Assembly: GCA_002794465.1 (NCBI GenBank)
Contig: MTSL01000148.1
Location: 1 to 13,235, forward strand
Length of the DNA stretch: 13,235 bases
Origin: Paramicrosporidium saccamoebae KSL3
Taxonomy: Eukaryota > Fungi > Cryptomycota
Reading direction: 5' to 3'
Part shown: one piece after another, positions 1 to 13,235 of the stretch
Numbering within the stretch: the first letter of the stretch is position 1
Layout: every line of letters starts with the position of its first letter
Made by a program: the position numbers and the translations under genes
Notes under the pieces: generated by a model
Database searches by the model: none
Seen by the model: the letters and a program-made list of their open reading frames with translations, nothing else
Told to the model about the DNA's origin: nothing

Positions 1-303
1 CTCACCTCTGCTGACAAACCGATCAGCGATGAGTGCATGAAGACGGTCATCGATCGTCTTACTATCATGTTAGACTCGCACATCTGTCTTCCATTTGGAA
101 TGACTGTTGTTCCGAATAGGGGTGTCATTGTCGCTCCGGAAGCCTATTGTGAGGGAGCCGTCTGTGTGCCGACCACTACCGACCACCAACTCGCGGGCCA
201 AACTGCCAACGGAGCCCATTCCAATTTCTCCTCCGTCTTGAACCCGGGTGCCATATTGATGAGGATCATTAGAAGCGTCGCTGCCTTTGTCCGTGGCTAT
301 TAA
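1..303 (+). CDS. Possible 3' end of an upstream gene (5'-partial, unknown product)
   Basis: Frame 1 is open from base 1 to TAA 301-303 (100 codons) and AATAAA follows at 317-322. No recognisable domain, and the in-register antisense frame is nearly as open, so strand and coding status are uncertain. Confidence 0.25.
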   Translation, partial: LTSADKPISDECMKTVIDRLTIMLDSHICLPFGMTVVPNRGVIVAPEAYCEGAVCVPTTTDHQLAGQTANGAHSNFSSVLNPGAILMRIIRSVAAFVRGY

Positions 304-1436: not shown

Positions 1437-1446
1437 TATATATAAA
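1437..1446 (+). promoter_or_regulatory. TATA box
   Basis: TATATATAAA ending 52 nt upstream of the ATG at 1499. Confidence 0.65.
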
Positions 1447-1498
1447 CAAACGGTCAGCTGAGAGTCACCCTCTACAGTGACGTGTATTTTGATTGCGC

Positions 1499-1555
1499 AT
1501 GCCCTTTATTTATATCTTGTTATTATCTTTGCTGGCCGCCGTTCCGATTGAGGGA
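1499..1555 (+). other. Predicted N-terminal signal peptide
   Basis: MPFIYILLLSLLAAVPIEG: hydrophobic core FIYILLLSLLAAV followed by small/helix-breaking residues; cleavage plausibly after G19 (judged by eye). Confidence 0.75.
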
Positions 1556-4500
1556 CACTGGGTGCGAAGCTTGCGAGATAATGACAAGGTGTCACAAGAG
1601 GAACGAGCTTCAAGCAATGTCAGCCTACAGACAACGGAAAAGGGCCTCCGCCCGATTGTAGACTTGGTCGATACGATAGTGGCCAACTTGCCAATTACTA
1701 TCCTCTTGTCCCCAAATAATAGTGTTCCCCAGGCTGTGCTATCCACTACACTGACTACTACCCCCACTACTGCACGAACCACCACTTCTACCTTAACGCC
1801 CACTACTACACCGACTACTACTGCACGAACCACCACGCCTACCTCAACGTCCGCTACTACACCGATTGCTTCACGAACTACTACACCTACATCGACGTCC
1901 ACCATTACGCCGATGACGACTCCTACTACTTTGTCATCCCAGACGTCGAGCAATGGTAGTCCTCGTGCGACGTCTACTGCCACTCCAACCACTAATGGAC
2001 GAACTACTACACCTATATCAACGCCCACCACTACGCCGATGACAACTCCCACTGCTTTTGCATCGCAGTCATCGAGCGGTGGTAGCCCTACTGTAACTCC
2101 TACTACCACTGTTACTTCGTCGCTACAATCACTGTGCGGTGGTAGCCCTAGTGTAACCTCCACCACTACTGCACGACTTACTACACCTGCCTCAACGCCC
2201 ACTACTGCACCAACCACCTCGCGGGCTACTACACCCATATCAACGCCCACCACTACGCCGACGACGAACCCCATTACTACATCGACTACTTTGCCATCAC
2301 AGCTATCGAACGGTGGTACCTTTACTGTAACTCCTACTACCACTCCGGTTACCCCTCCCGCCAATACACCGACTACTACCACCGTTACTTCATCGCTACG
2401 ATCATTGTGCGGTGGTAGTCCTAGTGTAACGTCTACCACTACTCCCACCGTTATTGCACGAACTACTACGCCTGCCTCAACGCCCACCACTACGCCGACG
2501 ACTCCCATCACTACATCGACCACTTTTTCATCCCAGCCATCGAGCAATGGTAGTCCTAGTGTGACTTCTACTAGACTGACTGCCACTCCAACTACTACAC
2601 CGACGACGAACCCCGTTACTACATCGACTACTTTGCCATCACAGTCCTCGAGCGATGCTAGTTCTAGTGTAACTACTACTTCCACTTCCACTACTACTCC
2701 GGCCACTACACCTACTACTTCCAACTCGCCATCAAGTAGTAGTTCTGGGGGAGCATCTTCCAGTACATCGTCTATCACTCCCGTGACAACGCCTCCTACT
2801 TCCTCCAGTCAGCCATCAAGTAGTAGTAGCTCTGGAGGAGCGCCTTCTACTACGCCAGCCACCACTCCTATGCCGACGTCTACTACTTCCAATTCGCCAT
2901 CAAGCAGTAGTTCTGGGGGATTATCTCTCACCACGCCGCCCACTACTCCTATGACGACACCTACTTCCAATCAGCGAGCAAGCAGTAGTAATTTTGAGGG
3001 CGCATCTTCTGCTACGTCGCCTATCACATATATAGCGACTCCTACTCCTTCTTCCAGTCAGCCATCGAGTAGTGGTAGTTCTGAAGGAGTACTTTCCACT
3101 ACGCCGGCTAATACTTCCAATCAGCTATCAAGCAGTAGTTCTGGGGGAGTGTCTTCCATCACACAGTCTACTACTCCTATGACGACACCTATCACTTCCA
3201 ATCCACTATCAAGTAGTAGTAGTTCCGGGGGATTATCTTCTGTTACGTCGCCTATCCCATCTATAACGACGCCTGCCACTTCGTCCGACCCACCATCAAG
3301 CAGTAGTAATTCTGGGGAAGGATCTTCTACTGCGCCGGCTACCACTTCTGCGACGACATCTACTACCTCCAATCAGCCATCAAGCAGTAGTTCTGGGGAA
3401 GTGTCATCCATCACGCAGTTTCCTACTCCTATGACGACCCCTATCACTTCTTCCAGTCAGCCATCAAGTAGTAGTAGTTCTGAAGCAGTACCCTCTGCTA
3501 CATCGCCTATCACATCTGTAACAACGCCTACTACTACTTCCAATCAGTCATCAGGCAGTAGTAGCTCTGGGGGAGCATCATCGATTACTCCGCCTACCAC
3601 TCCTATGACAACGCCTACTACTTCTTCCAATTCACCATCGAGTGGTAATAGCTCTATAGCACAAACTACTACGCCACCTACCACTCCTATGACGGCACCT
3701 ACTACTTCCAATTCGCTATCGAACAGTAATAGCTCTAGAGGAGCATCTACTACAGTTACGGTTACTCCCGTTACTACGCCATCTACTATTCCTATGACGG
3801 CGTCTACTACTTTGTACAGTCAATCATCGGACAGCAGTAACTCTGAGGGAATATCTCCTACTACACCGCTTACCACTTCTATGATGACGTCTTCTGCTAG
3901 TTCCAATCTGCCATCAAGCATTAGTAGCTCTGGAGAAAGATCTTTCAACATATCTACGACCACTCCGACTACCATACTCAACATGCCGAGTCAGTCGAGT
4001 AGCAGCAGCTCTGAAGAAGCGTCTTCTACTATATCAAATGCCTCGTCGGCGCAAGCATTAAGCAGCAGTTCGGAAGAAGTACAATCTACCAGATCAACTA
4101 CCTCATCGATGCACACATTAAGCAGCACTCCTGGAGAAGTGTCTTCTACTAAATCAACTACTTCATCGGCGCAAGCATTGAGCAACAGCTCTGAAGAAGT
4201 ATCGTCTAATAGCTCGGCTGCTCCATCGACGCAAGCGTTAAGCAGTAGTCCTGAAGAGGTGTCGTCTGCTAGCTCAACTGTTTCCTCGGTGCAAATGACC
4301 AGCAGTAGCTCTGAAGAGGTACAATCTGCCAGATCAACAGCCTCATCGGAGCAAGTATTAAGCAGCAGCTCTGGAGACGTATCTTCTACTCAATCAACTA
4401 CTTCATCGGCGCAAGCAGTGAGCAGCAGTTCTGAAGGAATGTTTCCTACCATACCAACTACTTCCTCGACGCAAGAGTCGAGTAACAGCAGCTTTGAAGA

Positions 4501-7500
4501 AGTGTCGTCTAATAGCTCGGCTGCTCCATCGACGCAAGCGTTAAGCAGTAGGCCTGAAGAGGTGTCGTCTGCTAGCTCAACTACCCTTTCAGTGCAAGAA
4601 CCGGGTGGCAGCAGCTCTGAAGGGTTCTCGTCCACTAGATTAACTGCCTCATCGGTACAAACATCAAGTAGCAACAGCTCTGAAGAAGTGTTTTCTACTA
4701 GTTCAACTTCCTCATCGACGCACACATTAAGCAGCACTCCTGGAGAAGTGCCTTCCACTAGATCAACTACTTCGTCGGCGCAAGTTTTAAGTAGTGAAGG
4801 CCCTGAAGGAGTGTCTTCTACTGGCTTAACCATCTCATTGAGGCAAGGATCAAGTAGTAATAGCTCCGAAGAAGCACAATCCACTAGCTCGACTTTTTCA
4901 TCGACGCAAGTATTAAACAGTAGTTCCGACCAAGTGTCTTCTACTACTTCAGCTACCTCATCGGTACAAGTATCAAGGAGCTACAGCTCTGAAGAAGCGT
5001 CACTGACCAGATCAACTGCCTCACCAGTGCAGGAATCGGGTAGCAGCAGCTCTGAAGGATTTTTGTCCACTAGATCAACTGCCTCATCGGTACAAGCATC
5101 AAGCAGCAATGGCTCTGAAGAAGTGTCTTCTACTAGTTCAACTTCCTCATCGACGCACACATTAAGCAGCAGTTCTGAAGAAGTACCATCCACCAGTTCA
5201 ACTGCCTTATCGGCGCCAGAATTTAATAGTAGCCGTTCTGAAGAAAGGTCTTCTGCTCCATCGGTGCAGGAATCGATCAGTAGTTCTGAAGAAGTGCAAT
5301 TCACCAGATCAACTACTTTGTCGGCGCAAGCATTGAGCAGTAGTTCTGAAGGAGTGTCTTCTGTTAGACCAACCACCTCAGCGGTACAAGAATCGAGAAG
5401 CAATAGCTCTGAAGAAGCATCTTCCACCAGATCAACTGTCTCACTAGTACAAGAATTGAGTAGCAATAGTCGTGAAGAGGGACCTTCTACCAGTTCAACT
5501 ACCTCATCAACGTATGCACTAAGCAGTAGTTCTGAAGAAGTACCATCCAGCAGATCACCTGCCTCATCGATACGAGAATCGAGTAGTAACAGCTCTGAAG
5601 AAGTACAATCCACTTTATCAACTTCTTCATCCGTGCAAGCATTAAGCAGTAGCGGTTTTGAAGAAGTACCATACACCAGATCAATTGCCTCCTCGGTACA
5701 AGCATTAAGCAGCAGCTCTGGAGAAGGGTCTTCTACTAAATCAACTACTTTATCGGTGCAAGAATCAAGCAGTAGTTTTGAAGAGGTGTCGCCCACTAGC
5801 TCAACTGCCTCGTCGGCGCAAGAATCGAGTAGAAGTGGTTCTGAAGAAGTGCCGCCTACTAGCTCAACTACTTTATCGGCGCAAGCATTAAGCAGCAACA
5901 GCTCCGAGGACGGACAGTCCACTAGTTCAACTACCTTGTCAGTGCAAGCACTAAGCAGGACCTCTGAAGAAATGTCGTCTACTAATTCGACCACTTTAAT
6001 GGCGCAAGAACTGAGTAGTAACAGCTCTGAGGAAGGGCGGTTCATCAGATCGGCTGCCTCATCAATGCAAGGATCGAGTAGTAGCAGTTCTGAAGAAGTA
6101 CAGTCCACTAGCTCGGCTGCTTTGTCGGCGCGAGCATCAAGCGACAGCAGCTCCGGAGAAGCGCCTTCTACTCGATCAGCTACTTTGTTGGCGCAAACAT
6201 TAAGCAGCGGTTCTGGAGAATTGTCTTCCACTAGACCAACTACCTCCTCGACACAAGCATTAGGCAGCGACAGCTCTGAAGGAGTGCGCTATACTAGCTC
6301 AACTGTCTCATCAATGCATGAATCGAGTAGCAACAGTTCTGAAGACGGACAATCCACCAGCTCAGCTACCTTATCGATGCAAGGATCAAGTAGTCTCGGC
6401 TCTGAAGAAGTGTCTTCTACTAGATCACCGACTTTATCGACACAAGATTTGAGTAGTGATGGCGTTGAAGAAGTGTCCTCTACTGGCTCAGCTACCTCAT
6501 CGGTACAAGTATCAAGGAGCCACAGCTCTGAAGCAGCGTCGTCTACTACCTCAACTGCTTCATCGGGCCAAGAGCCGAGTAGTCACAGCTCTGGAGAAGT
6601 ACAATCCCTTAGAGCAACTATTTCATCGACACAGGCATCAAGCAGCAGCAGTTTTGAAGAAATGCTGTCCACCGGGTCAGCCACCTCCGCGGCACAAGTA
6701 TTAAACAGTAGCTCTGAAGAAGTCTATTCCGCTGGCTCAACTGCTTCGTCCGTGCAAGAATCGAGTAGTAATAGCTCTGAAGAAACATCCTCCACTAGAT
6801 CAACCACTTCATCGGCGCAAACATTAAGCAGTAGTTCTGGAGAATCGTCTTCCACTAGACCAACTATCTCCTCGGCGCAAGAATTAGGCAATAACAGCTC
6901 TGAAGGAGTGTCCTCTGCTAGTTTAATTGCCTCATCGGTGCAAGGATCGAGTGGCCACAACTCTGAAGAAGTGCCTTCTACCCAATCGACTACTTCATTA
7001 ACACAAGAATTGAGCAGCAGTTCTGGAGAAGCGTCTTCTACTCGGTCAACTACCTCGCCAGCACAAACATTAAGCAGCAGTAGCTCTGAAGACGTACAAT
7101 CCACCAGATCAGCTACTCCATCAACGCAAGTTTCGAGTAGTAACAGCTCTGAAGAGGTGTCTTCTATTCGACCGACTACTTCATCAGCGCAAACATTAAG
7201 CAGCGGTTCTGGAGAGTTGTCTTTCACCAGATCAACTACCTCATCGACACAAGTATTAAGCAGCAGCTCTGAAGAAGCGTATTCCACTAGCTCAATTGCT
7301 TCATCGGTGCAAGAATTGAACAGTAGCAGCTCTGAAGAGCATTCGCTCTTTAGCTCAACTATTTCATCGGCGCAAGAACCAAGTAGCAACAGCTCTGAAA
7401 AGGCGTCTTCGACTCGATCAAGTGCTTCTTCAATACAAGCATTAAGCAGCAGCTCTGGAGAAGTGTCTTATGCTCGAGCAACTGCTTCATCGGCGCAAGA

Positions 7501-10500
7501 ATCGATTAGTGGTAGCTCCGAAGAAGAACAGCCCACTAGTTCAATTGCCTCCTCGACGCAAGCATTAAGCAGCAATAGCTCTGAAGAGGTGTCGTTCACT
7601 AGTTCAATTTCCTCATCGATGCAAGAGCCCGGTAGCCACAGCTCTGGGGAGGTACAATCCTCTGGAGCAACTATTTCATCGGCACAAGTATTAAGCAGCA
7701 ACAGTTCTGAAGACGGACAATCCACCAGCTTAACTACCTTTTCGGTGCAAGCATTCAGCAGCAGCCCTGAAGAAGTATATTCTACTAGCTCAACTGCCTC
7801 ATCGATGCGAGAATCGAGTAGCAATAGCCTTGAAGAAGTGTCGTCTACTGGCTCAACCATCTCATCGGTACAAGTCTCAAGGAGCCACAGCTCTGAAGCA
7901 GTGTCGTCTACTAACTCAACTGCTTCATCGGGCCAAGAGCCGAGTAGTCACAGCTCTGGAGAAGTACAATCCCTTAGAGCAACTATTTCATCGACACAGG
8001 CATCAAGCAGCAGCAGTTTTGAAGAAGTGCTGTCCACTATGTCAACGATCTCCTCGGCACAAGCATTAAGCAGCAGCTCTGAAGGAGTATATCCTACTAG
8101 CTCAACTACCTCATCAGTCCAAGAATCGAGCAGTGACGGCTCGGTAGAAGGGTCTCCCGCTAGACCGACTGCCTCATTAACGCAAGCATTGAGCAGTAGT
8201 TCTGAAAAAATGTCTTCTGCCAGCTCAACTGCCTCATCGGCACAAGAATCGGTTAGTAATAGCCCTGAAGCACCGCCCACCAGATCAACTGCTTCATCGG
8301 TGCAAGAATCGCGTAGTGGCAGCTCTGACGAGCTTTCGTTCACTAGGTCGGCTATTTCATCAACGCAGGCATTAAGCAGCAGTTCTGAAGAAGTATCATC
8401 CGCTATAACAGCTACTCCATCAGTGCAAGCATTAAGCAGGAGCAGCTCTAAAGAAGTACCATCCATTAGCTCAACTACCTTATCGGTACAAGTACTAGGC
8501 AGTAGCTTTGAAGAACTATCGTCTACTAGCTCGATTAGCCCATTGGCGCGAGAATTAAGTAGTAACAGCTCTGAAGAAGGACAGTCCACCGGATCAACTC
8601 TTTCATCGGTGCAAACAGCGAGCAGCGGCCATGAAGAAGAATCGTCTAATAGCTCAACTATCTCATTGGCGCAAGCATTAAGCAGTAGTTATGAAGAGAG
8701 ACTTACCAGTTCAGCTTCCTCACCAGCGCAAGAGTCGAGTAGCAGTAATTCTGAAGAAGCGTCGTCTACCAGGTCAACTGCCTCGTCGGCACAAGCATTG
8801 AACAGCAGCCCTGAAGAAGCATCTTCTACCCGGTCAGCTACTTCATCGGTGCAATCACTAAGCAACAGTTCTGGAGAAGTGCCTTCCATTAGCTCAATTG
8901 CCTCATTGATGCAAGCACTAGGCATTAGTTCTGAGGAAGTGTCTTCCACTAGTTCAACTATTTCATCGGCGCAAGGATCTATTAGCAACAGCTCTCAAGA
9001 AGAACAGCCCATTAGTTCAACTACCCCATCGGCGCAAGCATTAAGTAGCAGAAGCTTTGAAGGAGTGTCTTCCAATAGCTCAACTGCTTCATTGGTACAA
9101 GAATCGAGCAGTAACAGCTCTGAAGACGGACACTCCACTAGCCCGACCTTCTCATCGGTGCAAGAATCGAGTGGTAACAACTCTGGAGAAGGGCAATTCA
9201 CTCGCTCAACTACTTTATTGACGCAAGGATCGGGTAGTAACAGCTTTAAAGAAGTGTCTTCTGATAGCTCGGCTACTCTATCGGCACATGCGTTAAGCAG
9301 TAGCTCTGAAGAGGAGTCGTCTGCTAGCTCAACTAGCTCTTCAGTACAAGCACTAGGCATTATTTCTGGAGAATTTTCTTCCACCAGACCAGCTATTTCA
9401 TCGGCGCAAGCATTAAGCAGTAGAAGTTTTGAAGGAGCGTCTTTTACTAGCTCAACTGCTTCATTGGTACAAGAATCGAGTAGTAACAGCTCTGAAGACG
9501 GACACTCCACTAGCTCGACTTTCTCATCGGTGCAAGAATCGAGTAGCAACAGCTCCGAAGAAACATCCTCCACTAGATCAAACGCTTTGTCAGTACAAGA
9601 ACTGAGCAGCAGCAGCTCTGAAAAAGTGTCATCCACCAGATCAATTACCTCCCCGACACAAGTATTAAGCAGCAGTTCTGGAGAAGTGTTTTCTACTAGT
9701 GCAATCGCCTCGTCAGTGCAAGGATCGAGTAGCCACAGCTCTGAAGAAGTGCCTTCTACCCAATCAACTACTTCATTAACACAAGAATTGAGCAGCAGTT
9801 CTGGAGAAGTGTCTTCCACTAAACCAACTACTTCATCAACGCAAGCACTAAGCAGTAGTATTGAACAAGTACAATTCACCAGATCGACTGCATCATCGGT
9901 GCAGACAGCAAGTGGTAACAGCTCTGAAGAGATACAATCCACTAGAACGACTACTCTATCAGTACAGACATCAGATAGTAACAGCCCTGAAGGATTATAT
10001 TCCATTAGCTCAACTGCCTCATCAATTCAAGAACCGGGTAGTAGTTATGAAGAGGAGCCTTCTACTAGTTCAACTTTCTCATCGACGCACGGACTAAGCA
10101 GCAGCTCTGGAGAAGGGTCTTCTACCGGATCAGCTAGTTTTGAAGAGGTGTCGCCTACTAGCTCGACTACCTCACCGATTCAAACATTAAGCAGCAGTTT
10201 TGAAGAAGTGTCTTCCACCAGATCAACTGTCTCACCGATCCGAGTATTAGGCAACAGGAATTCTAAAGAAACATTGTCTACCATTTCCACTACCTCATCA
10301 GTCCAGGCGTTAAGTAGCAGCCCTGAAGAAGTATATGCTACTACATCGACTACCTCGTCGGTGCAAACATTAAGCAGTAGTTCTGAAGAAGTACAACCCA
10401 TCAGTTCAACAATTTACTCAATGCAAACGTCCAGAAATAGTTCTGAAGAAGTACAATCTATTAGAGCAACTACTTTATCGGTGCAAGCACTAAGCAGCAA

Positions 10501-13235
10501 CAGCTCTGAAGGAGTGCGTTATACCAGCTCAACTGTCTCATTGACGCAAGAATCGAGTAGTAATAGCTTTGAAGAAGTGCCTCCCGCTAGCTCAGCTACT
10601 TCATCGGCGCAGGAATCGAGTAGCAACAGCTCTGAAAAATTGTCTTCGACTCGATCAAGTACTTTATCAACACAAGAATCAAGCAGCAGTTTTGAAGAAG
10701 TTTCTTTTACTAGCCCAACTACCTCATCAACACAAGCATTAGGCAGTAGTTTTGAAGGAGTGTCTTTCACCAGATCAGCTATCTCATCGGCGCAAGCATT
10801 AAGCAGCAACAGCTTTGAAGAAGTGTCTTTCACTGGATCAACTATCTCATCAGTGCAAGAATCGAGCAGTAGCTCTGAAGAGGTGTCGCCCGCTAGTTCA
10901 ACTACTTCACCGACGCGAGCGTTAAGCAGCAGTAGTTCTGAAGAAGTACCATCCACCAGATCAACTGTCTTAGTGGTGCAAGAATCAAGCAGTAACAGCT
11001 CTGAAGAAGGACAGTCCATCAGATCAACCACCTCATCGGTGCAAACATCGAGTAGCCACAGCTCTGAAAAAGTGTCGTCTACTAAATCACCGGTCTCATC
11101 GATACAGGCATTAAGCAGCAGCTCGGAAGAAGTGTATTTCACTAGCTCAATTGCCCCGTTGGTGCAAGAATCAAGTAGAAGTGGTTCTGAAGAGGTGTCG
11201 CCTACTAGCCTAACTACCTTATCGGCGCAAGCACTAAGCAGCAACAGTTCCGAAGACGGACAGTCCACTAGTTCAACTACCTTGTCGGTGCAAGCACTAA
11301 GCAGGAGCTCTGAAGAGATGTCTTCCACCAGATCAACTACTTCATCAACGCAAGCATTAAGTAGTAGTTCTGAAAAAGCGCCTTCTACTAGCTCAACTAC
11401 CCCATCGGTACAAGTATCAAGGTGCTACAGCTCTGAAGTACCACCCACTAGCTTAACTGCTTCATCGGCGCAAGAACCGAGTAGCGACAGTTCTGAAGAA
11501 GCGTCTTCCACCAGATCAACCGCCTCTTTAACGCAAGTATTTAGTACTAGTTCTGAAAAAGTGTCTTCTACTAGCTCAACTGCCTCATCGGCGCAAGAAT
11601 CGATTAGTAATAGCTCCGAAGTATCGCCCACCGGATCAACTGCCTCATTAACGCAAGCATTGAGCAGTAGTTCTGAAAAAGTGTCCTCTACTATATCAAC
11701 TGTCTCACCAGTGCGATTACTAGGTAACAGGAATCCTAAAGAAACATCGTCTACCAGGTCAACTACCTCATCGGCACAAGCATTAAGCAGTTTTGAAGAA
11801 GTATCTTTTACAAGCCCAACTACCTTATTGGCACAACCATTGGGCAGCAGTTTTGAAGAAGTGTCGTCTACCGGATCAACTATCTCGTCAGTGCAAGAAT
11901 CGAGCAGTAACAGCTCTGAAATAGGGCAGTCCACTAGCTCAACTACTCTATCGGTGCAAGCATTGAGCAGCAGTAGTTTTGAAGAGATTTCGTCCATCAG
12001 ATCAGCCACTCCACCGGCGCAAGCGCTAAGCAGTAGTTTCGAAGAAGTGTCGTCTACTAGCTCAACTACCCCATTGGTGCGAGGATCAAGCAGTAGCAGC
12101 TCTGAAGAAGGACAGTCCATCCGATCAGTCACCACATCGGTGCAAACATCGAGTAGCCACAGCTCTGAAAAAGTGTCGTCTACTAGATCGCCGGCCTCAT
12201 CGATACAGGCATCAAGCAGCAGCTCTGAAGAAATGCCGTCTAATAGCTCAGCTGTTTTATCGGCGCGAGAATTAAGCAGCAACAGCTCCGAAGACGGACA
12301 GTCTACCAGGTCAACTACCTCATCGGTACAAGTATCAAGGAGCTACAGCTCCGAAGTATCGCCCACCGGATCAACTGTCTCATCGGCGCAAGAATCGAGT
12401 AGCAATAGATCTGAAGAAACGTTTTCCACCAGATCAACTACTTCATCGACGCAAGCGTTAAGCAGTAATTCTGGAAATGTGTCCTCTACCAGATCAACCG
12501 TCTCACCAGTGCGAGTATTAGGCAACAGGAATCCTAAAGAAACATCGTCTACTAGGCCAACTACCTCATCAACACGAGCATCAAGCAGCTTTGAAGAAGT
12601 GTCTTCCACCAGATCAACTACCTCATTAACGCAAGCATTAAGCAGCAGTTTTGAAGGAGTGTCTTCCACCAGGTCAGTTATCTCATCAATGCAAACAGCG
12701 AATCATAGCAGCTTTGAAGACGTATCACCCACCGCGTCTACCACTTTGTCGATTAAACCAGCAGACATCAGTAACTCTAAAGAAGCGCCCTCCAGTGCAC
12801 CCAGTACATCGGTTGTGCCCCCACCGCAAGAGTCAAACAGTAATAGCTCTGAAAGAATGATGCCCATTATGGCGACTGCTAGCATCCGGGAATCATCTGC
12901 TACCAGTGCGGATAGAACATTAGGCGAAACGCCTTCCTCTGAATCTACCATGCCATCGAGTACGTCAGCAGCGCAAAGGCGCTCTTTCAGCTCCAGAAAC
13001 ATTTATATATCGGCATCCCACAATCCAGCCTCCTTTGTAGCACCGCTGCGGTTCTCCAATTCGGAAAGCCACTCTGCATCGGAATCCCATGCTGCATCAC
13101 GAACCGGATCTCCCTGGACGGAATCGAGGACAAGTCTCACTATCGCAGCATGTCCTCCTGCAAGTCGTAGCATGTGCACCCATTATGTGCCTGTGATCAT
13201 CACCACCGTGATCAACAATATCATCAACGGTGCCG
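1499..13235 (+). CDS. Giant secreted mucin-like Ser/Thr/Glu-rich tandem-repeat protein, 3'-partial (>=3912 aa)
   Basis: ATG at 1499 gives MPFIYILLLSLLAAVPIEGHWVRSLRD...; the same frame (codon starts = 2 mod 3) reads SSEEVQSTRSTTSS at ~4070 and ...MCTHYVPVIITTVINNIINGA at the window end. I translated many segments without meeting a stop. The ORF track lists nothing in this frame, as expected if it only reports stop-terminated ORFs. The shadow ORFs keep one antisense frame from 1510 to 13002, so there is no frameshift. Confidence 0.93.
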   Translation, partial: MPFIYILLLSLLAAVPIEGHWVRSLRDNDKVSQEERASSNVSLQTTEKGLRPIVDLVDTIVANLPITILLSPNNSVPQAVLSTTLTTTPTTARTTTSTLTPTTTPTTTARTTTPTSTSATTPIASRTTTPTSTSTITPMTTPTTLSSQTSSNGSPRATSTATPTTNGRTTTPISTPTTTPMTTPTAFASQSSSGGSPTVTPTTTVTSSLQSLCGGSPSVTSTTTARLTTPASTPTTAPTTSRATTPISTPTTTPTTNPITTSTTLPSQLSNGGTFTVTPTTTPVTPPANTPTTTTVTSSLRSLCGGSPSVTSTTTPTVIARTTTPASTPTTTPTTPITTSTTFSSQPSSNGSPSVTSTRLTATPTTTPTTNPVTTSTTLPSQSSSDASSSVTTTSTSTTTPATTPTTSNSPSSSSSGGASSSTSSITPVTTPPTSSSQPSSSSSSGGAPSTTPATTPMPTSTTSNSPSSSSSGGLSLTTPPTTPMTTPTSNQRASSSNFEGASSATSPITYIATPTPSSSQPSSSGSSEGVLSTTPANTSNQLSSSSSGGVSSITQSTTPMTTPITSNPLSSSSSSGGLSSVTSPIPSITTPATSSDPPSSSSNSGEGSSTAPATTSATTSTTSNQPSSSSSGEVSSITQFPTPMTTPITSSSQPSSSSSSEAVPSATSPITSVTTPTTTSNQSSGSSSSGGASSITPPTTPMTTPTTSSNSPSSGNSSIAQTTTPPTTPMTAPTTSNSLSNSNSSRGASTTVTVTPVTTPSTIPMTASTTLYSQSSDSSNSEGISPTTPLTTSMMTSSASSNLPSSISSSGERSFNISTTTPTTILNMPSQSSSSSSEEASSTISNASSAQALSSSSEEVQSTRSTTSSMHTLSSTPGEVSSTKSTTSSAQALSNSSEEVSSNSSAAPSTQALSSSPEEVSSASSTVSSVQMTSSSSEEVQSARSTASSEQVLSSSSGDVSSTQSTTSSAQAVSSSSEGMFPTIPTTSSTQESSNSSFEEVSSNSSAAPSTQALSSRPEEVSSASSTTLSVQEPGGSSSEGFSSTRLTASSVQTSSSNSSEEVFSTSSTSSSTHTLSSTPGEVPSTRSTTSSAQVLSSEGPEGVSSTGLTISLRQGSSSNSSEEAQSTSSTFSSTQVLNSSSDQVSSTTSATSSVQVSRSYSSEEASLTRSTASPVQESGSSSSEGFLSTRSTASSVQASSSNGSEEVSSTSSTSSSTHTLSSSSEEVPSTSSTALSAPEFNSSRSEERSSAPSVQESISSSEEVQFTRSTTLSAQALSSSSEGVSSVRPTTSAVQESRSNSSEEASSTRSTVSLVQELSSNSREEGPSTSSTTSSTYALSSSSEEVPSSRSPASSIRESSSNSSEEVQSTLSTSSSVQALSSSGFEEVPYTRSIASSVQALSSSSGEGSSTKSTTLSVQESSSSFEEVSPTSSTASSAQESSRSGSEEVPPTSSTTLSAQALSSNSSEDGQSTSSTTLSVQALSRTSEEMSSTNSTTLMAQELSSNSSEEGRFIRSAASSMQGSSSSSSEEVQSTSSAALSARASSDSSSGEAPSTRSATLLAQTLSSGSGELSSTRPTTSSTQALGSDSSEGVRYTSSTVSSMHESSSNSSEDGQSTSSATLSMQGSSSLGSEEVSSTRSPTLSTQDLSSDGVEEVSSTGSATSSVQVSRSHSSEAASSTTSTASSGQEPSSHSSGEVQSLRATISSTQASSSSSFEEMLSTGSATSAAQVLNSSSEEVYSAGSTASSVQESSSNSSEETSSTRSTTSSAQTLSSSSGESSSTRPTISSAQELGNNSSEGVSSASLIASSVQGSSGHNSEEVPSTQSTTSLTQELSSSSGEASSTRSTTSPAQTLSSSSSEDVQSTRSATPSTQVSSSNSSEEVSSIRPTTSSAQTLSSGSGELSFTRSTTSSTQVLSSSSEEAYSTSSIASSVQELNSSSSEEHSLFSSTISSAQEPSSNSSEKASSTRSSASSIQALSSSSGEVSYARATASSAQESISGSSEEEQPTSSIASSTQALSSNSSEEVSFTSSISSSMQEPGSHSSGEVQSSGATISSAQVLSSNSSEDGQSTSLTTFSVQAFSSSPEEVYSTSSTASSMRESSSNSLEEVSSTGSTISSVQVSRSHSSEAVSSTNSTASSGQEPSSHSSGEVQSLRATISSTQASSSSSFEEVLSTMSTISSAQALSSSSEGVYPTSSTTSSVQESSSDGSVEGSPARPTASLTQALSSSSEKMSSASSTASSAQESVSNSPEAPPTRSTASSVQESRSGSSDELSFTRSAISSTQALSSSSEEVSSAITATPSVQALSRSSSKEVPSISSTTLSVQVLGSSFEELSSTSSISPLARELSSNSSEEGQSTGSTLSSVQTASSGHEEESSNSSTISLAQALSSSYEERLTSSASSPAQESSSSNSEEASSTRSTASSAQALNSSPEEASSTRSATSSVQSLSNSSGEVPSISSIASLMQALGISSEEVSSTSSTISSAQGSISNSSQEEQPISSTTPSAQALSSRSFEGVSSNSSTASLVQESSSNSSEDGHSTSPTFSSVQESSGNNSGEGQFTRSTTLLTQGSGSNSFKEVSSDSSATLSAHALSSSSEEESSASSTSSSVQALGIISGEFSSTRPAISSAQALSSRSFEGASFTSSTASLVQESSSNSSEDGHSTSSTFSSVQESSSNSSEETSSTRSNALSVQELSSSSSEKVSSTRSITSPTQVLSSSSGEVFSTSAIASSVQGSSSHSSEEVPSTQSTTSLTQELSSSSGEVSSTKPTTSSTQALSSSIEQVQFTRSTASSVQTASGNSSEEIQSTRTTTLSVQTSDSNSPEGLYSISSTASSIQEPGSSYEEEPSTSSTFSSTHGLSSSSGEGSSTGSASFEEVSPTSSTTSPIQTLSSSFEEVSSTRSTVSPIRVLGNRNSKETLSTISTTSSVQALSSSPEEVYATTSTTSSVQTLSSSSEEVQPISSTIYSMQTSRNSSEEVQSIRATTLSVQALSSNSSEGVRYTSSTVSLTQESSSNSFEEVPPASSATSSAQESSSNSSEKLSSTRSSTLSTQESSSSFEEVSFTSPTTSSTQALGSSFEGVSFTRSAISSAQALSSNSFEEVSFTGSTISSVQESSSSSEEVSPASSTTSPTRALSSSSSEEVPSTRSTVLVVQESSSNSSEEGQSIRSTTSSVQTSSSHSSEKVSSTKSPVSSIQALSSSSEEVYFTSSIAPLVQESSRSGSEEVSPTSLTTLSAQALSSNSSEDGQSTSSTTLSVQALSRSSEEMSSTRSTTSSTQALSSSSEKAPSTSSTTPSVQVSRCYSSEVPPTSLTASSAQEPSSDSSEEASSTRSTASLTQVFSTSSEKVSSTSSTASSAQESISNSSEVSPTGSTASLTQALSSSSEKVSSTISTVSPVRLLGNRNPKETSSTRSTTSSAQALSSFEEVSFTSPTTLLAQPLGSSFEEVSSTGSTISSVQESSSNSSEIGQSTSSTTLSVQALSSSSFEEISSIRSATPPAQALSSSFEEVSSTSSTTPLVRGSSSSSSEEGQSIRSVTTSVQTSSSHSSEKVSSTRSPASSIQASSSSSEEMPSNSSAVLSARELSSNSSEDGQSTRSTTSSVQVSRSYSSEVSPTGSTVSSAQESSSNRSEETFSTRSTTSSTQALSSNSGNVSSTRSTVSPVRVLGNRNPKETSSTRPTTSSTRASSSFEEVSSTRSTTSLTQALSSSFEGVSSTRSVISSMQTANHSSFEDVSPTASTTLSIKPADISNSKEAPSSAPSTSVVPPPQESNSNSSERMMPIMATASIRESSATSADRTLGETPSSESTMPSSTSAAQRRSFSSRNIYISASHNPASFVAPLRFSNSESHSASESHAASRTGSPWTESRTSLTIAACPPASRSMCTHYVPVIITTVINNIINGA
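1742..2720 (+). repeat. Repeat zone A: Thr/Pro-rich degenerate coding repeats
   Basis: Recurrent actactacacc / acgcccaccactacgccgacgac motifs encoding TTPxSTPTTTPxT, punctuated by Q-x-SSNGSPSVTST-like blocks. Confidence 0.85.
2721..3985 (+). repeat. Repeat zone B: ~15 units, mostly 78-87 nt, (N/S)QPSSSS(S)SGGxSS + TTPMTTPTT
   Basis: Anchor ccatcaag(c/t)agtagt..tctgg(g/a)gga recurs near 2722, 2806, 2890, 2968, 3055, 3118, 3199, 3283, 3370, 3454, 3541, 3628, 3709, 3817 and 3904. Confidence 0.85.
3986..12720 (+). repeat. Repeat zone C: ~140 degenerate 60/63-nt coding tandem repeats (20/21 aa)
   Basis: Anchor agcagctctgaagaagt recurs every 60 or 63 nt; consensus SEEVSSTRSTTSSAQALSS(S). Copy number estimated as span divided by ~61.5 nt, not counted unit by unit. 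Confidence 0.95.
12721..13235 (+). other. Non-repetitive C-proximal region of the giant ORF (incomplete)
   Basis: Periodicity ends after SSFEDV at ~12720; translation continues ...KPADISNSKEAPSSAPSTSVVPPPQES...GSPWTESRTSLTIAACPPASRSMCTHYVPVIITTVINNIINGA with no stop. Confidence 0.85.

Follow-up and report, generated by a model that had tools for sequence, protein, structure and literature searches.

The signalling mucins Hkr1 and Msb2 are recognized by a signal peptide, an extracellular Ser/Thr-rich tandem-repeat (STR) domain, an HMH domain beside a single TM helix, and a cytoplasmic tail (PMC11581313, PMC4411306). In Hkr1, an O-glycosylated Ser/Thr-rich repeat domain begins immediately after the signal peptide, and the 1,802-aa protein is encoded by an intronless 5.4-kb ORF (PMC11581313, PMC4411306). 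The adhesins of the Flo, Als and Epa type and Flo11 carry a Ser/Thr-rich tandem-repeat stalk that varies by recombination, and Flo, Als and Epa depend on a folded N-terminal domain for ligand binding (PMC8621652, PMC7199969). That domain spans 200-300 aa. The large PTS-type repeats of metazoan mucins lie in one giant exon, which is often mis-assembled or poorly annotated (PMC6269512, PMC1552070). These mucins are defined by the PTS repeats plus VWD/Cys-knot domains in the gel-forming class or SEA in the membrane class (PMC1552070). In secretory acidic phosphoproteins, Ser clusters lie beside Glu (S-x-E, SSSEE), as in Fam20C-type substrates (PMC3416761, PMC10294482). Fam20C phosphorylates secreted proteins, including casein and biomineralisation proteins, at S-x-E/pS, and invertebrate homologues of the kinase exist (PMC3416761, PMC5824888).

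The 13,235-nt stretch of DNA analysed here (the window) was translated on the plus strand from position 1499 to 13235. This gave 3,912 codons with no stop, and the frame was open up to the window edge. The original prediction had claimed a frame of at least this size and had named an in-frame stop as the finding that would count against it. The translation contained none among the 3,912 codons, and the claim was borne out. From the base composition, stops are expected at 4.7% of codons, and the probability of finding none in 3,912 is ~4.8e-82. Over the same region, the other two plus-strand frames contained 128 and 368 stops, and the three minus-strand frames 394, 374 and 29.

The ORF (1499..13234, plus strand), of at least 3,912 codons, is truncated by the window edge, and its product has a mass of at least 393 kDa and a pI of 4.46. 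The visible product consists of 34% Ser and 15% Thr (49% together) with 7% Glu, and it contains 59 N-x-S/T sites, 179 S-x-E motifs and only 5 Cys. The gene is likely a single exon across the repeat body; short introns without stops are conceivable in the unique parts.

An in-frame TGA (1490..1492, plus strand) lies three codons 5' of the ATG at 1499. No ATG intervenes, and 1499 is therefore the earliest possible start. Reading of the sequence and a motif scan pointed to a TATA-like box, TATATATAAAC (1437..1447, plus strand), ~50-62 nt 5' of the ATG, as a candidate promoter element. No Shine-Dalgarno-like sequence was found upstream of the ATG. The giant ORF is preceded by an ORF-poor flank of 1.2 kb. 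At the left end of the window, frame +1 is open from the edge to a TAA at 301-303 (1..303, plus strand; 100 codons, GC3 0.59), and this may be the 3' end of an upstream gene on the same strand. Two sequences resembling polyadenylation signals are found there, ATTAAA at 299, overlapping the TAA, and AATAAA at 317. This upstream ORF is separate from the mucin-like gene. Searches of the protein database, PDB and NCBIfam gave no relative for it, and a protein-database search with three left-flank frames gave none either; tRNA and Rfam scans of the window found nothing.

The mechanical ORF list gave a very different picture of the region. The plus-strand frame is absent from it because the frame runs off the window, and such ORFs are not listed there. 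All 10 of the 10 listed ORFs of at least 100 aa inside 1499-13235 are on the minus strand, and they cover 66% of the region. These ten ORFs, of 108-422 aa (1510..12669, minus strand), all fall in a single minus frame, the one with 29 stops across 1499-13235. 'LLLNAC' occurs 26 times in them, or 58 times if near-variants are counted, and 21% of their residues are D or E vs 4% K or R. A motif SSELLLNAC or LLLDSC recurs in them. The original prediction had described precisely this situation, a real gene missing from a list filled with its antisense shadows and a cluster of acidic 'LLLNAC' proteins that might be called on the wrong strand. The motif count and the acidic composition agreed with the latter description, and the stop counts, together with the neutral-decay, repeat-spacing and pN/pS results given below, all favoured the plus strand.

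The minus-strand ORFs are by-products of the codon composition of a Ser/Glu/Thr-rich gene on the plus strand and are not genes. Genes on the minus strand were rejected on the stop counts by frame and on the composition of the shadows. Exact look-up of ten complete window ORFs in the protein collection gave no match, a result that GTG/TTG starts and trailing stops may invalidate for some of them; one window ORF with an ATG start, looked up as plain letters, also gave no match.

It is scarcely credible that the plus-strand frame is not a gene at all, that is, a non-coding minisatellite left open by chance, a dead pseudogene, or the shadow of true genes on the minus strand. The last of these draws on the unusual openness of the one minus frame (29 stops, ORFs up to 422 aa) and on its pN/pS of 0.55-0.59, near the value of the plus frame. 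Because these antisense values nearly equal the sense value, pN/pS alone does not decide the strand. The minus frame is nevertheless broken 29 times, comparable pN/pS values are to be expected where wobble positions fall together, and the minus-strand ORFs were not found in the protein collection. All non-gene readings can also point to the failure of the searches to find a homologue for the plus-strand gene.

Chance openness was examined through the repeats that make up most of the frame. Tandem Repeats Finder (TRF) reported one array at 4001-12666 with a period of 63 bp, ~141 copies, 62% matches and 7% indels, and most copies were 60-77% identical to their reference copy. Two consensus units were back-translated, tandemised and mutated to the observed divergence, by substitutions only, in 300 runs. 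A mean of 85 in-frame stops (range 54-129) was expected in the array from this neutral decay, but none was observed.

The spacings of the repeats gave a concordant result. All 111 of 111 start-to-start spacings, from nine repeat families, were divisible by 3. This indicated that every surviving indel preserved the frame, and it stands against an accidentally open array just as the absence of stops does.

Clean units of 21 and 20 aa were compared for diversity by codon position and for pN/pS. Nucleotide diversity peaked at codon position 3 (0.42 and 0.37 vs 0.25-0.30 at positions 1-2), and the pN/pS of the plus frame (0.51 and 0.58) was the lowest among the frames. The non-repeat codons at both ends, 85 at the N-terminal and 172 at the C-terminal, were likewise open. 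The openness of these unique ends also counts against a non-gene reading, as does the placement of the ATG and a signal-like peptide directly after a stop and the TATA-like box.

An open minisatellite or a pseudogene was thus rejected by the neutral-decay simulation and the frame-keeping spacings. The plus-strand frame is a real gene of eukaryotic type, kept open by selection. The divergence of the copies also means that the array should assemble unambiguously, and its length is therefore unlikely to be an assembly artefact.

The product had the layout claimed in the original prediction: it starts with a hydrophobic N-terminus and a short unique segment, continues with repeats over ~3,650 aa and then passes into a C-terminal part free of repeats. 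The first 19 residues, MPFIYILLLSLLAAVPIEG (1499..1555, plus strand), formed the top hydropathy peak of the visible protein (KD19 = 1.88) and had a small residue at position -1 of the putative cleavage site. From hydropathy, aa 1-19 is a candidate signal peptide. A unique stretch of 66 residues follows (aa 20-85; 1556..1753, plus strand), for which no relatives were found. Within it lies a second hydrophobic segment, PIVDLVDTIVANLPITILLS (aa 50-72; 1646-1714, plus strand; KD19 = 1.75). This is probably not a TM helix because it contains two Asp; it could instead represent a pro-region or a small element with structure or amphipathic character.

Repeat zone 1 (aa 86-400; 1754..2698, plus strand) is made of irregular TTTPTSTP-type units with 41% Thr and 13% Pro. 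A module of ~91 aa is duplicated in this zone, with the motif SSL[QR]SLCGGSPSVTSTTT and one Cys per copy. The two Cys, at aa 213 (2135-2137) and aa 304 (2408-2410), occupy equivalent positions and make up 2 of the 5 Cys of the visible product. A disulfide between them, within one molecule or between two, is conceivable. Repeat zone 2 (aa 401-830; 2699..3988, plus strand) has 33% Ser, 22% Thr and 13% Pro, and a period of 27-29 aa (81-87 bp) with a unit of approximately TTPTTSNSPSSSSSGGASSITPPTTPM. Together, zones 1 and 2 (745 aa) have the classic PTS composition, with 22-41% T, 18-33% S and 13% P.

Zone 3, the main array (aa 831-3740; 3989..12718, plus strand), contains ~140 units of 20/21 aa with the general unit [AE]LSSSSEEVSSTRSTTSSAQ. 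Units of 20 aa, ALSSSSEEVSSTSSTTSSVQ, alternate with units of 21 aa, ESSSNSSEEVSSTRSTASSVQ, with higher-order periods of 41 and 62 aa. The array is 38% Ser, 11% Thr and 9% Glu with 3.2% Pro, and carries a net charge of -174. Within the unit, conservation peaks at the acidic core, with E at position 8 in 92% of copies and the flanking Ser in 71-85%. The conservation of the SSEE core in each unit indicated the acidic Ser cluster as the selected feature.

The main array contained 170 S-x-E motifs vs 100 +/- 8 in composition-matched shuffles, a 1.7-fold excess, and in zones 1 and 2 the motif was nearly absent (5 in 745 aa). This excess traces to a single ancestral unit, so that the motifs are not independent evidence.

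The relationships between the zones were tested by alignment. Homology between zones 1 and 2 was supported by z = 7.5 with consensus units, and between zones 2 and 3 by z = 10 in a 93-nt ungapped alignment of real DNA with codon-shuffled controls. The latter pair was not significant (z = 1.2) when TRF consensus units and strict scoring were used. With the three zones homologous, the entire repeat body derives from one unit family. Along the protein, this family grades from T/P-rich to S/E-rich.

Two pairs of blocks stood above the background, 6399-6698 vs 7764-8063 with 89% identity and 11628-11920 vs 12426-12718 with 82%. These are relatively recent block duplications, which shows that the array was still being reshaped. 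Growth of the array would have proceeded by unequal recombination of 20/21-aa units and of larger blocks. GC3 was 0.38 in the main array vs 0.49-0.59 in the unique parts; the two unique ends of the gene itself had 0.49-0.54. The codon usage of the array mirrors that of its founder unit, and it is therefore unsuitable for taxonomy. An array of ~140 units that is old and diverged speaks of long-term selection for length and for the acidic Ser cluster.

The non-repeat C-terminal part (aa 3741-3912, 172 aa; 12719..13234, plus strand) is cut by the window edge. Sequence complexity rises in this unique part, shortly before the window ends. The part contains two Cys and one Trp and has a moderately hydrophobic end, HYVPVIITTVINNIINGA, at the edge. 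The RR at aa 3827-3828 (12977-12982, plus strand) is the sole dibasic site in 3,912 aa, where ~5 would be expected from the K+R content. Depletion elsewhere and the placement after the repeats suggest a candidate processing or shedding site. A Kex2-processed repetitive pro-protein of the Rep1 type was rejected on the presence of one dibasic site in 3,912 aa. By hydropathy, neither the ~3,650 aa of repeats nor the rest of the visible product beyond aa 72 contained a TM-grade segment.

Relatives were sought with several approaches. The original prediction had proposed a search with the unique parts only, and it had named a full-length match to a characterised protein as a result that would remove the novelty. 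The search was run with both ends against ~5.8 billion protein clusters and gave no relative, hence no characterised homologue. Twenty repeat units, searched against the same clusters, had no relative among the 8,000 candidates listed. Neither PDB, searched with both ends, nor NCBIfam gave a match. Back-translated patterns of the C-terminal part and of the repeat identified no related locus in metagenome, viral and prokaryote-genome contigs, and the repeat pattern found nothing related in 185,579 prokaryote genomes. An exact 41-mer near the right edge was absent from metagenome, prokaryote-genome and viral contigs.

The protein-cluster searches (with 8,000 candidates listed), NCBIfam and the pattern searches thus agreed with the original prediction, in which the repeat was not recognised as part of any named family. 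With no relative found, conservation across species is unusable as support for the gene. The absence of the product from the protein collection fits its being overlooked by annotation pipelines, and it fits equally well a source genome that is missing from the collection.

Very long Ser-rich repeat regions are also known from bacteria. The serine-rich repeat proteins (SRRPs) of the GspB/Fap1 type have a long specialised signal peptide, SASASAST dipeptide-type repeats, an LPXTG anchor and an accessory Sec locus. The likeness to GspB and Fap1 lies in the length of the Ser-rich repeat regions, which in those proteins are glycosylated and surface-exported. A bacterial SRRP was rejected, in view of the short signal without a charged n-region, the lack of a Shine-Dalgarno sequence and the ORF-poor 1.2 kb upstream, and also in view of the 185,579 prokaryote genomes in which nothing related was found. 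A vertebrate mucin was rejected as well, on the CpG content of the flank, which is not depleted (observed/expected 0.97). The fungal setting of the original prediction is plausible, and filamentous fungi, many protists or invertebrates would agree equally well with the position of the TATA-like box relative to the ATG and with the AATAAA that follows the upstream ORF.

The product is probably a secreted or surface-bound, densely O-glycosylated, mucin-like polyanionic brush. According to this model, the protein would enter the secretory pathway and, as established mucin biology suggests, would be O-glycosylated on a large share of its ~1,900 Ser/Thr. With its glycans, the repeat body would be a stiff, heavily hydrated and extended polyanion, a 'bottle-brush' whose length would be on the order of 1 micrometre at ~0.25 nm per residue. 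Located at the cell surface or in the extracellular matrix, such a brush may form a barrier, keep surfaces apart, lubricate or modulate adhesion. The C-terminal part from aa 3741 on would most likely anchor or organise it through a membrane-proximal domain, a TM helix, a GPI or a wall linkage. The low Pro content of the main array (3.2%) counts against the brush model, as classic PTS mucin domains differ in this respect.

How the brush is held or used admits several more specific readings. One is a coat or adhesin that is GPI-anchored or linked to the wall, or else a secreted gel or glue, with the repeats themselves mediating hydration, adhesion or anti-adhesion. This is possible, with the balance somewhat against it. 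Extreme length, a body made only of repeats and the acidic charge all suit such a protein; block duplications and array dynamics are typical of surface-protein repeats, and disulfides between molecules would be possible through the two Cys of the duplicated N-terminal module. On the other hand, the visible part has no C-terminal signal and no N-terminal binding domain, and with 5 Cys in total it shows no multimerisation domain of the VWD or Cys-knot type.

The adhesins themselves share with this product a secretory nature and a central Ser/Thr-rich repeat stalk, although here the repeats extend several times farther. The 66 unique residues contained no folded binding domain of the PA14, Ig-like or Flo11 type and had no PDB, NCBIfam or protein match. 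The protein was thus unlike Flo, Als and Epa, as had been claimed, in that no large folded N-terminal domain precedes the repeats.

The original prediction had preferred signalling mucins such as Msb2 and Hkr1, or secreted gel or glue proteins, a preference that is at most tentative. A signalling mucin like Msb2 or Hkr1 is an unlikely reading, made by analogy. In such a protein, the glycosylated repeats would hold a single-pass membrane sensor inactive, and stress or shedding, for example at the RR site, would lift the inhibition and activate a MAPK pathway via the downstream membrane-proximal domain and tail. The order of parts is that of Hkr1, including the intronless repeat body and the unique region after it, and the sole dibasic site falls in that post-repeat region. 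Msb2 is cleaved by a yapsin. However, the visible 172-aa tail is similar to no protein, all deposited Msb2 and Hkr1 sequences included. There is also no TM helix within the 3,912 aa, and the product is at least 2-3 times as long as Hkr1 (1,802 aa).

The acidic Ser clusters bring in another reading, a secreted polyanionic phosphoprotein whose SSEE and S-x-E clusters, of the type known from caseins, would be phosphorylated by a Fam20C-type Golgi kinase. The protein would belong to the matrix of an invertebrate animal, where it might bind Ca2+, interact with mineral or act as an adhesive. We regard this as quite doubtful. The excess of S-x-E over the shuffled arrays and the superior conservation of the EE core agree with it, and the distance from TATA to ATG, like the AATAAA that follows the upstream ORF, would suit a metazoan no less than a fungus. 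Its weight is reduced by the descent of the S-x-E excess from a single ancestral unit, and by the classic O-glycosylation-type PTS of zones 1 and 2, with almost no S-x-E. To our knowledge, Fam20C-type kinases are not known from fungi.

Caseins, osteopontin, dentin phosphophoryn and the invertebrate matrix and cement proteins resemble this product in being secreted, disordered and acidic with S-x-E clusters, the phosphorylation here being predicted. They differ from it in being far smaller and in lacking long T/P-rich mucin zones. It is a long shot that the ~140 SSEE clusters, instead of being a by-product of composition, are functional elements of a cation-binding polyanion of megadalton scale, multiply phosphorylated and/or glycosylated, that acts as a mineral, cement or matrix scaffold. 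If this were true, a single polypeptide, from a eukaryotic lineage that has been sampled poorly, would join a classic T/P-rich mucin module with a casein-like phosphoserine array. We know of no described protein that combines the two.

Returning to the brush model, a polyanionic glycoprotein with a mass of at least 393 kDa even without its glycans would probably be the main determinant of surface or matrix chemistry in the cell that produces it. What is noteworthy about the product is its size, an old array whose acidic SSEE unit is conserved, the gradation across three zones and the lack of any relatives found.

The locus also bears on annotation. Giant exons of such repeat genes are often missed or mis-assembled (PMC6269512). 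The locus exemplifies a real gene of at least 11.7 kb of the sort that escapes ORF lists and repeat-masked annotation, with plausible acidic ORFs on the wrong strand. The combination of stop asymmetry, neutral-decay simulation, 3n spacing and pN/pS is reusable to settle such cases from sequence.

Compared with the known systems, the metazoan mucins (MUC1/4/12/16/17 and MUC2/5/6/19) are alike in having a giant repeat exon, and zones 1 and 2 agree with their PTS criterion. They differ in that no VWD, Cys-knot or SEA domain is present in the visible 3,912 aa, which have 5 Cys and ends without a PDB match. In addition, the candidate signal peptide here lies in the repeat exon, and the main array is Ser/Glu-rich and Pro-poor.

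Hkr1 and Msb2 (1,306 aa) are differentiated from the product by the absence of sequence similarity, by a main repeat that is acidic (SSEE core) and Pro-poor, and by its length of at least 3,912 aa. In the visible part, which ends at 13235, neither an HMH domain nor a TM helix with a cytoplasmic tail is seen; these could lie farther downstream. The likeness consists of the signal-like N-terminus seen by hydropathy, the ~3,650 aa of Ser/Thr-rich tandem repeats and the absence of an N-terminal globular head. By this analogy, the gene resembles Hkr1 and Msb2 in layout but cannot be filed in their family. Large, fast-evolving, relative-less Ser/Thr-rich repeat proteins are common in eukaryotes, and the gene product is of this familiar kind, a mucin-like repeat protein rather than a new type of system.
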